Shown: in pieces, positions 21,368-29,500 of the stretch
Numbering within the stretch: the first letter of the stretch is position 1
Layout: the number at the start of each line of letters is the position of its first letter
Source of the DNA: Hyphochytrium catenoides
Lineage: Eukaryota > Protista > Hyphochytriomycota
Assembly: GCA_900088475.1 (NCBI GenBank)
Contig: FLMG01004602.1
Span: 1 to 42,044 of the forward strand
Reading direction: 5' to 3'
Length of the DNA: 42,044 nucleotides
The notes under the pieces: model-generated
What the model was told of the DNA's origin: nothing
The model's input: the letters and a program-made list of their open reading frames with translations, nothing else
The model's database searches: none
Made by a program: the position numbers and the translations under genes

Positions 21368-21451
21368 CCGGCCTTAGCTCAGTTGGTAGAGCGATTGACT
21401 GTAGTAGTCACAGACATCAATTGGTCGCTGGTTCGATTCCGGCAGGCCGGA
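21368..21451 (+). tRNA. tRNA-Tyr(GUA) with an 11 nt intron (21405-21415)
   Basis: Acceptor stem CCGGCCT/AGGCCGG plus discriminator A; D arm TAGCTCAGTTGGTAGAGC; anticodon stem ATTGA/TCAAT with GTA at 21401-21403; intron at the canonical 37/38 position; T loop GGTTCGATTCC. Confidence 0.97.
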
Positions 21452-21460: not shown

Positions 21461-21993
21461 CCATCCAAGGTTTGGTACTACTCCTACTGTAATTCACTTG
21501 ATACCTCTTCACTCGTACAGTAGAGCTATGGCTTTCCTTGTAAACATCGCCCACGGTCAGTTACTACCCTTTCGCTTCAATTAGACGCATATACAGTTAT
21601 GTATTCCACCAAGAATAATACCTTACTATAGAGTGATCATCGTGCTCTTTTTTACAGGAAGTCTATCGTTATTCAAACCCATCATTGTCGCATATCGTGG
21701 TGCGGGTACAAGAAGAGCGTACTGACGATCGGTCTAAAATGCTGTCATCACAATCCGACTTTCTTATTATTTTGTCGCCGCAATCGTTGAGCTTCATTTC
21801 TGATTTGAGAAGATCAATTAGCGTTGACCATCCAATAGCTTTCTTCAGAATTACGTCGAAAATCTCGATAAGCCGCCAGGTAGCTAGAGTTGAGTCCAGC
21901 TGAGGCGGGCTTGCTATCCGTGACGTGTGAGCCTGACGGAACCATAGCAGAGATAGGCCGCTTGTGGCTGTCAAAGCTGAGAGCGGAGGGAGG

Positions 21994-24900
21994 ATGAGCT
22001 ATGATGAGGGTGTACGATTGGGCGGCCACCTGACCCGCGCAGATCTAAAATATCTAAAGAAGGTTGTCATCAAGGTTGGGACCAATGTAGTCAGCACCGA
22101 TGACGGCGGTGTGGCGCTAGGGCGGATCGCTTACCTGATAGAAGAGATTGCGGAGCTTAAGAGAATGGGCAAGAGCGTGTTGCTGGTGAGTTCTCCTGTT
22201 GCCGGGATTCTTGCTTGCAATCGACAGCAACAGCCTAATCATAGCGGCAGGTCACTAGCGGCTCGGTAGGCATCGGACGCTCAGTCTTGGATAAACAACT
22301 GCTGCTTTCAGCTTCACTGAGGACCCACGTGCTGGCTGCCGGCCGCTTCACTTTGCCTCAGCATAAGCCGGGTCCGTGCGCAGGTAACGTAACACCTTCG
22401 TCCGATGCGAACAGCTGTAGGTGCCCATGCTAAACCAGCTTGGACCTTGTCTATTCTGTTTTCTTAGCTGCGGGACAGTCTGGCCTCATGGCTCTTTATT
22501 CAACGCTATTCGGTCAGAAGGACTGCACTTGCAGTCAGCTGCTAGTCACGGCAGAGGACTTTAGGACCGAGCAGCGTCGAACAAACCTTATAGACACCAT
22601 CAATACGCTACTGGACCTGGACATCATCCCAATCGTCAATGAGAATGATGCCGTCAGCGCGCCACCAGACGGCAAGATTTTCTCTGACAATGACTCTTTA
22701 GCGGCTTTAGTCTCTGGTACGTATCCATTTAGCCCTACCGTCTTACCTAGGCTCTATTGGACGTTCATCTCCCCACTCCTGCCCTGGGATATCTCTTTTA
22801 TATGTCCAAAGAGTACTGCTTGTGCTACCAAGGACCTCACAGTTTCCATCTTACTTGTCCACTTCATTGCTTTTCTTGTCCTCTGCCTTCATATTCCTGT
22901 TTTCTTAAAAATTCTTCTTTCTCCTTAATGTAGGGGAAATCGGCGCTGATCTACTGCTTCTTCTGACGGATGTCGAGGGAGTGTATGACAAGCCCCCGAG
23001 TGAACCAGGTGCCAAGGTTAGTTGGACACGTTCTCCATCTCTATGTAGACTTGGAGGAAGTCACCTCCACAGATCCCTCCTATGAGTAGCCCTCAATCAC
23101 TTCTGTCTTCCTAGGCTCACTAAAACCTACAGGCTGAGAGCTCTTTTGTACTTTCTGGCCAAGCCTCCCGCCGAGTTTTTCCAATTCCCCTGTTTGCCTC
23201 TTTTTTCGTCTGCAAGACTTTACCAATCTTCTTTCATCGGCCTCCCTCCTGCACAACTTGATCAGATCCTATACACCTACAACCCAAAGATGACTATTCA
23301 AATCGGGGACAAGTCAACTAAAGGACGAGGTGGAATGGGCTCAAAAATAAATGCTGCAATGACTGCAGTGGAGAGAGGAGTCCGGGCTGTCGTGATCGCG
23401 AAGGGCACACGCTTGGGAGTGATCACAGAGCTGATAAGTGGAAAGAAGGTAGGTTCTGACATTACATTTCACTCTCATCTAACTAGTTTGGCCCACATCT
23501 CTGCCAGGTTTCACTCTTTTACCTTGGCTCACTTCTGGCTTTCCCCCCTCTTTCTTCTTATCTATTGCCTTATTTCTTCCTTATCACATCTAACCACGGT
23601 GGAATAGATTGGGACCTTATTTTCGCGGAATGTGGACTTGAGTGAATTCGAGACTGGCAGATCCGCAGAGGCCATGGCCAAGGCAGCACGAGAGGCAAGC
23701 AGGTATGCTGATTTTAGACTCAGTTATTATCGAAACGGGCTCACCTGAGAGTCCTTCGCCGCCTTAGAGTACTGCAGAGTCTCAGCACTGCTGAAAGAGC
23801 GAAGATTATGCACGCAGTGGCAGACTCATTGCTAGCTCGAGAGGAAGAGATTCTAGCTGCTAACCAGCGTGATATCGAGGCCGCAACCAAGCCTGGCAGT
23901 GGCATATCTAGCAACCTCCTTTCCAGGTGCTCTTCTGCTAATCTCCTTTAGATACTTTTCGTCGCTCCCCTTTTCCCGATATGTTCCGAGCTGCCAGTTT
24001 CCTGACTTCTTTCTTGCTTGTCTCATGAGCTTTACTGACTGAAGACGAGGGGACTAAGGAGGAAAGGAGCGACCATATACATGCGGGGAGAGAGCTGGGT
24101 CAATATATAGAGAGTAGAGAAAGCAAGACCGAGGCGCCTCAGTCCGCATTCTAAAGTGATCAATGCGGCTACTTTTGCCTGGGAAGCGTTCGTGCTAGAA
24201 GAGCTACATCTCTTACTCATGCCTCTAAGGAATTACAGAACCTAACTGTGATGGCACTTGCAGGCTTGCTTTGTCTAAATCCAAGATCAAGACACTTGTA
24301 GACGGCATCAGAAGTATCGCCAAACAAGAAGAACCGCTTAATAAGGCATGGATCCCATTAGTCTCTTGAGAGATAATGGGTCTTTCGCTTTTTATATTTT
24401 GCCCTCTTAATCCTATCGTTTCATCATCTGGGGACCCTTAATCGGTTATGTGGAATCTCTCTTACCTTTCCTGTCCCTTTAGGTGGTCTCTGCTATGGAG
24501 CTTGCACCGGGCCTGCTATTGGAGCAAACAACAGTCCCGATTGGAGTGCTTCTGGTTATCTTTGAGAGTAGGCCTGACTCTCTGCCACAGATCGCCGCAC
24601 TGGCGCTGCGATCAGCTAATGGCTTGCTTCTGAAGGGCGGGAAGGAAGCTACTAACAGCAACAAAGTCCTGCATATGGTCATAGTAGACGCAGTAGAGAA
24701 GGTAATCCTGTCTGCAGCTTCCCGTGCCGCTTACTTGCTAAAATCTCTTTCTATTTCCTTACCCTTTCCGCCTATCTACTTCACTTCACCTATATCTGGC
24801 AGCCTCCCTCGCCGTCAATCGACTGGGGCTACGGCAAGCTTGGACCTGGCACTAGTTAGACTCTCCACGTTCATTCCATTTGCTCTTATAGTCTGCGCAG

Positions 24901-26144
24901 TGGGCCCCCTCTCAAAGCCACAGCTCCTTAAGCAAGCTTTCTCTTGACTCCTGTCGTCTTACTTTTTGCAATGTTCTGTCAATGGCGTTTCAGGCTAGCG
25001 GAGGTCGCGTATCGCGGGACGTGATAGGTCTGGTGACTAGTCGAGAGGCCGTCTCTGACTTGCTGGCGCTGGACCATTTGATCGACGTTTGCATCCCCAG
25101 AGGGGGCGGCGAGCTTGTGAACTACATCAAGCGGAACACCAAGATGCCTGTGTTAGGCCACGCGGCAGGTAGAACCTCATTTCTTCTTGAGCCACTGTTC
25201 GTTCGGCTTAAGTCCCCGTTACTCTGTCTCTTGGCCTAAGTTTGGGGCTCCCAGCACTCCTTTACTTCTTTCTCTGCGTTGGATGTATGTTACATGGCTT
25301 CTCAGTTTTATTTTTCTGAGGAGTCGAGTGGCTGTCATGCTGGGTCTTGTGGGCTGGGACTCGGTGTGAAATTTCCGATCATCTTGGCTCCTTTTTCCCT
25401 TTTTCATCCGTTAAATGTGGCTAAACGGCAGCCATCGTTAACTCTTAAGGCATGGATCTGCTTCCTCACTCTCCTACTTAATATATAGGAATTTGTCACA
25501 TCTTTGTGGATAAGAGTGCAGAGTTTGAGAAAGCTGAGAGGATTATTATTGATGCAAAGACCAGTTATCCAGCGGCATGCAACGCTGTCGAGACTGTTCT
25601 CCTCCACCGCGATCTACTATCTACAGGATTTGCACAGCGTCTCCTCCAGCGCTTAGAAGAACGCAAGATTATCGTGCACGTTGGACCAACAGCTGAAAAA
25701 GAGAAAATCTTTTCTCAGCTCTCTGCTCCGCCGTCTCTAAGCCATGAGTATGGCTCTCTTGAGCTCTTGATCGAAGTGGTTCCAGATATCACTGATGCGA
25801 TCTCACATATAAACCGGTACTCCTCCGCCCACACAGAGGCAATTGTCACTGAAGATAAAGAGAGAGCCGAAGAGTTTCTTTCACGAGTGGATAGCGCCTG
25901 TGTCTTCCATAACGCCTCTACGCGCTTTGCCGACGGCTATCGCTTTGGTCTAGGAGCCGAGGTGGGCATCAGCACAGGAAGAATTCATGCTCGAGGGCCA
26001 GTAGGAGTGGAGGGGCTGCTGACTACGAAATGGAAGCTTCGAAGCAAAGAGAAGAAGGGACACACTGTGACTGACTTTTCTCCTGAGGGAGGAGAGGTGT
26101 GCAAGTATACACACAAGAAGTTAACGCTAGGAAGTAAGCTATAG
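21994..26144 (+). CDS. P5CS: Bifunctional delta-1-pyrroline-5-carboxylate synthase (glutamate 5-kinase + gamma-glutamyl-phosphate reductase), 11 coding exons
   Basis: Kinase motifs [40 protein letters not shown]; reductase motifs [69 protein letters not shown]; ends [12 protein letters not shown]. Confidence 0.97.
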
Positions 26145-26534
26145 TGATACGAAGAGCAGAGAGGCCTGGTGCCTAGACATGATCCAGAGAAAGCTATCAG
26201 AGCTGCAAGAAAGACTTATGCGTTGGAGGACGAGCAACAGAGAAGTCTGAGCAGGTGCTAAGGAGCTATTAGAGTGATACTGTTGACGGGGCAGGCCCCG
26301 CACGATCCCAGCGCCGTAGCCTATTTAACTTCAGCCTCGTCGCTAAACCTGCTCTCAGCAGAAGTCATGGACGCTAACGCTCAACAGGAGAGACATTGGG
26401 TCGGGCAAGTTTGGTACGCAGTTAGCTAATAAGTAACCGGGTTGACAGCCATGGCTAAGGCTGTCCCATAAGTTAGGCCTTCATACGATTCGACCGTATC
26501 GCTTTGTGCTTCTCCACTCCTCTTGCTTCTCTGA

Positions 26535-29500
26535 TTAATCCTCAATCAGCCCCTGGTCCTTAAGCTGCGCCCAGCCCTCTTCAGTGGGAGTGAATAAGTA
26601 GACGACTGCGGACATCATAAGGAACATCTTCGCTAGCTTCCACACGTCCTTCGGCGTCGTGCTACGAATCTGGAGAAGGAGACACAGCGGTCAGTCGTTA
26701 AGGGAAATCGGGAAAGTCAGCGGGAAGAAGAAGAATAGAAGTCATCAAAAGGCAAAGATGCCAAAAACTCTACACCCGCACCCAGGGCAGACGGAAAGCA
26801 TAAAGTGGTCACTGTGCCTCTCTCTCCTTCTATTTGCAGTTCTCTCATGTTCTTACCTGTTCAATGAGAAGCTCTTTGGCAAAAATCAAGACCATAAGTC
26901 GGTCAAAGATCAGTGTGCCAAGGATATCAAATGCGACAAGCGTGAAAATAGTAACACCAAGCTCCTTGTCTGGGAAGGGCACTAGCTGCAGAAACTTGTT
27001 GAACATTGGCATTATCTGCGACAGAACGAGAGGTCAGATGACATATGTCTAGCGTGAGGTCGACTTGCAGAAGAACAGGACAGGATTCATGCCAGTCAAA
27101 GCACAGAACGGCCTCACCTCCATAGAGCTTACAAAGATACCAATGCCACATAAGCCCAGGGAGTAGAGCAACCCGGGGTTCTCGGTAATGCCCTGCATGA
27201 AGGGCCTGCCTTTATAGTTCACAGCGAACACGCTCACCTAAGGACCAGACAATAATCAAGGTAAGTAGGTATGCAGCGTCAACAGGGCCCGTGATCAAGC
27301 ATTGTGAGGCGAACACAAGTGACAAGATGAAGAGCATGTGTTGTTCCTAGAAAAGCCTGACAAGGTAGGCTCCCCCAAGCGCATTGGAAAAGCAATGACA
27401 TCATAATTCCCAGCCAGGTCAGGCTTTACTCTTTTTAACAGTCTTGCTCCATTGCTTTTACCTGCTGAACGGTAGATATCATGAAGACAACGGTGTTGAT
27501 GAGGTTGGGCTTGAACTTCCCGTCGAGTGAAGGCTTCCACTCCTCTCCCAAGTGCTGCTTTGTTAGCCCTACAGCGTAGATCATGCAGAACAGATGAATA
27601 GCAAACTGGCCCAAGAGAGAGAGAAATAGTGCCGGGTGAAAGATTGATGTGAGAGGCCTCACTCGGCTGAGCTCCTGAAGAGGTGTAGCCCTACGAAATG
27701 GACCATTAACACGACATAAAAGTTAGACAACGCCCACGAGGTGTCAGAAGTTAGGAGATTAATCGACAAACGTTGAAGGACAGTGTCAGAAGTTAGGAGA
27801 TTTATCGACAAACGTTAAAGGACAGAAGTTAGGAGATTAATCGACAAAGTTGAAGGACAGTGAAGCCCTACAAGCCTTTGCTGAGGTGCACTGGCAGCTG
27901 ACCCACTGAGTCGGGTACTGCGTCTAGCTTTCCAACAGTGACCACTGACGTACCTGCTGAGCGTGAGGAAAGAGACAGTCATCAGCACTCCGGTGCTGGT
28001 CATCTGTCGGTCTCCATACTTCACACCATCCAAATAGAGGACGGAGAGAGAGTAAGAGGAGATAAGACAGTTGAGAGCGAGAATCTGGTACATCTGTATG
28101 GTTGTTACTAACGCGCAGCGCCCCTGTCTGATAATATCCACCGTGCCTCTAATGCTAGGGATCTTGGAGGTGAAGGGAGATGCGATAGAGGCGTCACCAA
28201 GCTTCACCATAGGAAGCTAAGGATATTCGGATAAGAGCAGGAAGACCAAAAGGCGAACAGAGAAGAGACAAGATAGGGTCAGCTACATCGTAACCCGGGT
28301 CATTCGCACGGTCAATACCTCTCTTTCTCACTCTTCTCTCTCTCAGGTATCTCCCTTTTCCAAAGCTGGACAAATCAAACCCTGCCTCGGCTTACCTCTC
28401 CATCTTCAAGATCATACATCTCTGCCATCTTCTGAGCAGAAAGCTCAAATCCCTTAGAGCCTTGCCGCGACTTCACTTGCTGACGCTGCTGCTCAGCTTC
28501 CCGGCGGGCCATATTCATGATAGCCTTCACTCGAGCAAAGCTGGGTTTACATTGTGTTAGCAACACAACCGCCCATATGAAAGGATATAATTTTTTAGAC
28601 GTCAACCATTTGCACTTCTATTGTAGATCACACTCAAAGAAAGTCAAGATAGCCAGAGAGGGCTGATCAAGGAGAGTCTTAGAGAGATGCCATCCTACCT
28701 GACACCTTCAGCCTCCAGTCTTCGCACCTCAGCTTCCAACTCCGCTTGCTTCTTTGCCATTAGCTCCCTTCGCTCCTCCGGCGTTAAGTTTTTTGAAGCC
28801 AGAGTCTATTACGCAAGGTAGTATCAGCACAGATTTAGCTTTTGCACAGGGCAACCAAGGGAACAGTCATGAGGGCAAAAGTGCTCAATTGGTGAAGGCA
28901 GAGTGGCTCTCTTAAGCGGTGAGGACATAAGGAGGCTCAGCTTTAGACTGATTCCTGTGCTTACCTTAGGCTCCTCTTTCTTGACCACTGCCTTCTGCTC
29001 CTTCTTTCCCCCGCCAGTCTTCTCCTCCAGCAGTCTAATGAGTTCACCCTTGTCATTCACATTCGTATGGTCGACCTGCAACTCCGTCAACTACAACCAG
29101 AAATAAATCAGCGCATTGGTCGGTGTAGGTGCTAGCTAAGTTAGGGAAAGAGTACAAGTGGCTACAAGGTGGATGAGCATATGAGCAAGTTCCTGGGATA
29201 ATAACTTTACGAAAGCCAGAACTTCGACTCACCTTCTTCTTGAGTGCTGACACGTGAAGCTTGCGATAGTCCACTGGCTTTGAGGGTGGCCCCGGCGTCT
29301 TTCTGTGCTTTGAAGAGGTTGAGGCGGCAGCTTGGCCGTCCGTCTTTTTATCACCTTTGTCGACATTGGCTGACCCAAACCCACTTAGTAGAGCTACTCC
29401 GACATGAGCCTACGCGGCACATTGTCAATGGGTCAGCGTCCTTTCAGACCTGCATCCTATAAGGCAAATAGAAGAAGAATATGTGGAGAAGATAGAGTTG

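Follow-up and report, generated by a model that had tools for sequence, protein, structure and literature searches.

A conserved C-terminal PTS1 suggests peroxisomal import of P5CS in Hyphochytrium catenoides and the oomycete branch

Introduction

Textbooks place proline synthesis in the cytosol or plastids of plants and in the mitochondria of animals, and P5CS, which joins a glutamate 5-kinase to a gamma-glutamyl phosphate reductase, is described as cytosolic in plants and mitochondrial in animals. The stretch of DNA analysed here (the window: 42,044 nt, the forward strand of contig FLMG01004602.1 of Hyphochytrium catenoides) carries a P5CS gene whose last sense codons specify Ser-Lys-Leu, and SKL is the prototype PTS1. 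Is P5CS a peroxisomal enzyme in this lineage, as was originally predicted from the nucleotide sequence alone, or does the tripeptide stand at its C-terminus for some other reason?

Results

A complete, two-domain P5CS gene

The P5CS gene occupies positions 21994–26144 of the forward strand and comprises 11 exons (741 codons plus a TAG stop). The gene model was built by joining exons under the guidance of tblastn with three full-length homologues (P0003, P0004 and P0005), and the joins yield a single open frame of 2226 nt and 741 amino acids with no internal stops, in which both domains lie; the order of its parts follows that of homologous P5CS throughout (collinear). All exons are on the forward strand. 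Exon 1 (21994–22185) begins with ATG and carries no presequence, as judged by tblastn and an upstream in-frame stop; exon 2 (22251–22383) has GT-AG borders and maintains the frame; and exon 3 (22468–22716), placed by Pfam, tblastn and frame, holds the kinase core with its NEND and DNDSLA motifs. Exons 4 (22934–23016), 5 (23266–23448, with the GRGGM motif), 7 (23768–23926), 8 (24264–24345), 9 (24483–24701) and 10 (24994–25168) are each supported by tblastn and frame, and exon 6 (23608–23702), which encodes the interdomain linker, by frame. Exon 11 (25489–26144) covers the reductase domain's C-terminal half, where the catalytic-site motif PAACNAVET lies, as well as the tail and the stop; it is supported by an open reading frame piece at 25506–26144, by tblastn and by matches to solved structures. 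Nine of the ten introns are GT-AG. Intron 8, which follows exon 8 (24346–24482, forward strand, AAG/GCATGG ... TTTAG), is GC-AG, and since homologues fuse the flanking exons exactly (...EEPLNK runs straight to VVSAMEL...), we take it to be a real intron of that class.

Pfam matches AA_kinase (PF00696) in exons 1, 3 and 5 and Aldedh (PF00171) in the last exon. In the model, KVGT, NEND, DNDSLA and GRGGM of the kinase all stand at alignment columns that are invariant among homologues, and C30, N31 and E34 of the PAACNAVET reductase motif are invariant in the homologue alignment of the last exon. Comparison of that exon with solved P5CS structures from human, Drosophila and Arabidopsis gave E values of 1e-71 to 3e-63; the best match was the human P5CS GPR domain (2h5g, E 1e-71), and Drosophila 7f5t and Arabidopsis 8j0e and 8y2h were also recovered. 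These matches extend to within a few residues of the solved C-termini, so no terminal exon is missing. By sequence criteria, then, the window protein belongs fully to the P5CS family. An additional exon 3' of SKL was also considered and rejected; homologues and solved structures stop at the same point.

The two ends of the protein

Read directly, positions 26112–26144 are CAC AAG AAG TTA ACG CTA GGA AGT AAG CTA TAG. The SKL tripeptide is encoded by AGT AAG CTA at 26133–26141 (forward strand), at the extreme C-terminus and immediately before a tandem stop, TAG TGA (26142–26147, with the TGA at 26145–26147). It closes a nine-residue tail, KKLTLGSKL (26115–26141, forward strand), that follows the conserved YTH. 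Lysines stand at positions -8 and -9 and a histidine at -10, so that two Lys and one His make up the upstream basic residues of the final dodecamer, and there are no acidic residues among the last 12. We modelled the last exon with AlphaFold2 as a part-domain monomer, using a 56-sequence alignment. Mean pLDDT for this model was 85; residues ~201 to 217 were without secondary structure and the last block had a pLDDT of 53. Such a low-confidence predicted coil would fit a free, flexible tail, within the limits of a monomeric part-domain model. A tripeptide of the form [SAC]-[KRH]-[LM] stands directly before the stop, the end of the protein agrees with the end of its homologues, and the window P5CS has what is expected, at the level of sequence, of a PTS1 cargo.

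At the other end, the kinase domain of homologues aligns from about residue 14 of the window P5CS. The frame is closed by a TGA at 21934 and contains no ATG from there to the start codon at 21994; three of the first 23 residues are acidic. A tRNA-Thr gene (anticodon TGT; 21368–21451, forward strand), followed by a T-run, lies ~540 bp 5' of the start codon, and so restricts the room for a P5CS exon farther upstream. There is neither space for nor sign of a mitochondrial or plastid presequence. The original prediction had described a protein ending in -SKL before TAG TGA, with basic residues ahead of the tripeptide and no N-terminal presequence, and our reading of the sequence and of the open reading frame agrees with it on all of these points, to the exact coordinate at the C-terminus.

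The tag is conserved among oomycetes and their relatives

When the last exon was searched against 1.84 billion representative proteins, the best matches had only 53–61% identity and no close relative was found. Eleven of the top 150 matches end in [SAC][KRH][LMI], an ending expected at random in ~0.4% of proteins on a rough estimate from typical amino-acid frequencies. In a maximum-likelihood tree the window P5CS pairs with a homologue, P0223, that ends in SRL, and a search with P0223 led to oomycete relatives. All retrieved oomycete P5CS (22 named clusters from 19 species and 12 genera, plus about 20 other clusters) end in SRL or SKL. The form ...A-R/K-P-x-S-S-R-L is found in Phytophthora, Plasmopara, Bremia, Peronospora, Nothophytophthora, Pythium, Globisporangium and Lagenidium, and -SKL in Saprolegnia, Achlya, Thraustotheca and Aphanomyces; every ending is thus a canonical PTS1, SRL in Peronosporales and Pythiales and SKL in Saprolegniales. 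Oomycete P5CS (for example P. infestans PITG_12161, P. sojae Ps108383 and Saprolegnia parasitica SPRG_01557) are the nearest relatives of the window protein, with 54–61% identity and a sister position in trees.

P0223 is the closest P5CS homologue of the window protein and is encoded by one uninterrupted open reading frame that ends at its PTS1, whereas the window gene has 10 introns. It lies on a gene-dense contig of 35.6 kb from an oomycete-like organism (L001, Logan SRR27418475), next to TatD-DNase-like and glutamine amidotransferase/His-biosynthesis-like open reading frames.

Trees were rebuilt with the last 25 residues cut off, so that the tag could not influence topology. IQ-TREE analysis of 68 rows recovered a clade (SH-aLRT 92) of the window protein, two metagenomic lineages and 19 oomycete rows, in which S[KR]L was present in 21 of 22 members. 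It was present in none of the 22 rows of the sister clade, which holds the ochrophytes Chattonella, Fibrocapsa, Ascophyllum, Tribonema and Mallomonas together with a trypanosome, a euglenid and other rows. In a FastTree analysis of 316 full-length proteins, the clade of window and oomycete proteins carried S[KR]L in 41 of 42 cases, as against 21 of 274 elsewhere; the tag was universal in the oomycete crown (36/36), outside which the window protein falls, and the window-oomycete grouping had a support of 0.75. The stretch that follows the conserved YTH measures 6, 8, 9, 10, 11 or 20 residues depending on the branch (nine in the window), and S[KR]L alone is constant. The SKL of the window P5CS is therefore far beyond chance, and the pattern indicates that selection has maintained S[KR]L across the oomycete/pseudofungal branch.

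The sole exception within the clade is P0303 (L002 2470-2590, Logan ERR6349611), which ends in YTHKKL at a genuine TAG. Its frame remains open past that TAG (RRHEESSRGIVKDYTLR...) as far as the end of the contig. The KKL ending could represent either loss of the tag or stop-codon read-through.

Several metagenome contigs (P0305, P0375–P0379 and P0326) encode a P5CS lineage that stands beside the window and oomycete proteins in the IQ-TREE analysis and ends in SKL or SRL. No named close relative came up in a protein search with P0305, and the lineage may belong to uncultured pseudofungus-like stramenopiles.

PTS1 endings outside the oomycete branch

Tagged P5CS sequences were also found in five non-oomycete species, with SKL, AKL or ARL as the ending. 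Three are Amoebozoa (Balamuthia mandrillaris, AKL; Nematostelium gracile, SKL; Phalansterium solitarium, AKL), and the others are the vampyrellid Leptophrys vorax (Rhizaria) and the haptophyte Prymnesium parvum. Three of the five sequences come from Trinity transcript assemblies, which means that the tag codons are present in the mRNA of those three species. Variation is limited to S or A, then K or R, then L, just as PEX5 recognition would predict, and this would be hard to account for otherwise.

Plant P5CS1 and P5CS2 and animal P5CS/ALDH18A1 share with the window protein the same bifunctional order of domains (glutamate 5-kinase first, gamma-glutamyl phosphate reductase second), ~50–57% identity in the last exon, the conserved catalytic motifs and an end only a few residues past a Y-T/L-H motif. 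Unlike the window protein, which ends in SKL and has no presequence, they lack a PTS1. The retrieved plant sequences end in ...YTHKDLNLEA or similar and the animal-like protein in ...PIPQRNTN, and no PTS1 was seen on the retrieved P5CS of ochrophyte algae, plants or animals.

These comparisons bear on the wider part of the original prediction. Its premise that plant P5CS stops shortly after YTHK holds in the retrieved sequences, and the animal protein is likewise without a PTS1. The survey of stramenopile C-termini that it had proposed gives a divided result, with the tag on the pseudofungal branch and none on the ochrophyte algae. As for a peroxisomal P5CS in this lineage, the targeting half of the idea is strengthened by the conserved tag, by the variable linker before it and by the PTS1 variants found elsewhere, but the tag is not specific to the lineage, since tagged forms occur also in Amoebozoa, a rhizarian and a haptophyte.

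Discussion

Import into peroxisomes

We consider it probable that the window P5CS is imported into peroxisomes as a PTS1/PEX5 cargo and that its tag is kept by selection in the oomycete/pseudofungal branch. Import by PEX5 of at least part of the P5CS pool is the best reading of the data: from the gene, its signal, the position of that signal at the true C-terminus and its conservation, we infer PEX5 binding, import and activity within the organelle. The PTS1 receptor PEX5 would bind the folded, probably oligomeric enzyme in the cytosol, and the enzyme would then be imported into the peroxisomal matrix. There it would phosphorylate glutamate with ATP and reduce the resulting gamma-glutamyl phosphate with NADPH to glutamate-5-semialdehyde/P5C. 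As a small solute, P5C could leave through peroxisomal pores, to be reduced elsewhere to proline or transaminated to ornithine. Why the reaction would be placed there is a matter for speculation: as an NADPH sink or redox shuttle, the roles suggested with the original prediction, as a way to use a peroxisomal NADPH pool, or to separate synthesis from mitochondrial proline catabolism.

Peroxisomes with both PTS1 and PTS2 cargo have been reported for Phytophthora, and GFP-SKL-type signals are functional in a diatom (PMC3178647). In Phytophthora palmivora, among the closest relatives that are open to experiment, CFP-SKL produced small peroxisome-type dots along the hyphae and sporangia, with a vector made for P. 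infestans (PMC6385658).

In its C-terminal [SAC]-[KRH]-[LM], predicted flexible tail and upstream basic residues, the window P5CS resembles canonical PEX5 cargo such as peroxisomal malate dehydrogenase and acyl-CoA oxidase, as well as CFP-SKL itself. It differs from them in function, as ATP- and NADPH-consuming amino-acid biosynthesis is unusual for peroxisomes, and we found no P5CS in the peroxisomal proteomes that have been described. Two points count against import. ATP and NADPH, both required by P5CS, do not permeate freely, and the reaction, if peroxisomal, would depend on a supply of both within the organelle; and the KKL ending of P0303 departs from the pattern of its clade.

Other explanations for the tag

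A dual or conditional localisation, in which the P5CS pool is partly imported or an alternative transcript drops the tag and yields a cytosolic isoform, seems unlikely to us. A splice-donor-like hexamer, GTAAGC (26134–26139, forward strand), does lie within the SKL codons AGT-AAG-C, and it is similar to donors in the P5CS gene (GTGAGT, GTAACG, GTAGGT and others); however, GTAAG arises automatically from the codon pair AGT-AAG, and the homologues lend no support to its use as a donor. None of them continues beyond the SKL point, and the single open reading frame of the oomycete-type P0223 ends at its PTS1. Candidate acceptors downstream of the hexamer yield only arbitrary tails (median 13 residues) and no homologue-supported exon, and the ~700 bp downstream of the gene must also accommodate the last part of a P5A-ATPase gene that runs towards it. 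Optional signals do have a precedent in the cryptic PTS1 of fungal glycolytic enzymes (GAPDH and PGK), which arise by alternative splicing or stop-codon read-through in Ustilago and Aspergillus. As there, a housekeeping enzyme of another compartment would have gained a PTS1, and in the window a splice-donor-like motif overlaps the signal; the difference is that the window gene model has the PTS1 as a constitutive part of its main reading frame. The pathway, for its part, is perhaps not confined to a single site. In the supplement of the P. infestans genome-scale metabolic model iSR1301, R00239 (glutamate 5-kinase) is tied to two genes, PITG_12161 (P5CS) and PITG_02973 (PMC6638193). A second glutamate kinase, distinct from P5CS, may thus exist in oomycetes, and where it resides would bear on the pathway.

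That the enzyme is instead cytosolic, as P5CS is in plants, with an SKL that is non-functional because it is buried in an oligomer or filament or overridden by its context, strikes us as improbable. Fly and Arabidopsis P5CS form filaments, to judge from the titles of their structures, and these could hide the C-terminus; the tail of the window protein, however, is predicted to be flexible. A silent ending would be expected to drift, yet S[KR]L persists in the clade (all but one of its members) through several remodellings of the linker, and variants that conform to the PTS1 consensus appear in other lineages. The model iSR1301 does place both P5CS reactions (PITG_12161) in the cytosol, but this assignment comes from the automatic predictor LocTree3 and not from experiment (PMC6638193).

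We give very little credence to the idea that S[KR]L is retained for the enzyme's own sake, as an oligomer contact or for regulation of the reductase domain. Peronosporales do conserve a stretch longer than the tripeptide (A-R/K-P-x-S-S-R-L). However, a distance of 6 to 20 residues from the folded domain is a poor match for a structural contact of fixed geometry, and the enzymes of plants, animals and ochrophytes manage without the tag. Across lineages the residues exchanged (S/A at -3, K/R at -2, L at -1) correspond precisely to what PEX5 tolerates, and a basic residue shortly before the tripeptide, such as Peronosporales carry, is a known PTS1-enhancing context.

Peroxisomal P5CS in a wider context

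If PEX5-dependent import is accepted for the oomycete branch, the tagged sequences from other groups allow a broader and more tentative proposal, which we hold to be possible but doubtful. Glutamate-to-P5C conversion in peroxisomes could be an old, overlooked pathway, with the PTS1 present early in pseudofungal stramenopiles, Amoebozoa, Rhizaria and haptophytes and lost in ochrophytes, plants and animals, where the enzyme would have become cytosolic or mitochondrial after loss of the tag; the oomycete-type organelle would then supply ATP and NADPH for the making of proline and ornithine precursors. A connection with zoospore osmoregulation is conceivable, as is one with a peroxisomal pool of pentose-phosphate NADPH.

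Our searches of the open-access full-text literature yielded neither a description of peroxisomal P5CS nor a mention of the signal on the oomycete enzyme. A 2009 survey gives P. sojae P5CS only as a multifunctional protein (PMC2705460). Enzyme and signal were both known already, and what appears to be new is their conserved combination, of which we could find no earlier description. The tag spans all of the retrieved oomycetes, a group that includes major crop and fish pathogens, and several free-living and pathogenic amoebae. If import is confirmed, an ATP- and NADPH-consuming reaction of amino-acid biosynthesis would be added to the known functions of peroxisomes, compartmentalised metabolic models would change (that of P. 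infestans, with its cytosolic P5CS, for example), and concrete questions would follow: how cofactors are supplied, and how metabolites pass the peroxisomal membrane. Transformation vectors for Phytophthora and the CFP-SKL marker already exist, which makes the idea directly testable.

The gene that converges on P5CS from its 3' side (~26845–28210, reverse strand) encodes a P5A-type ATPase, an Spf1/ATP13A1-like ER transmembrane-helix dislocase. Its last coding piece ends near 26845, ~700 bp from the P5CS stop. Pfam gave no match for three short pieces of this gene, and its identity comes from a PDB sequence search, in which one piece matched 8op3 and 6xmp with E values of 3e-32 to 7e-31.
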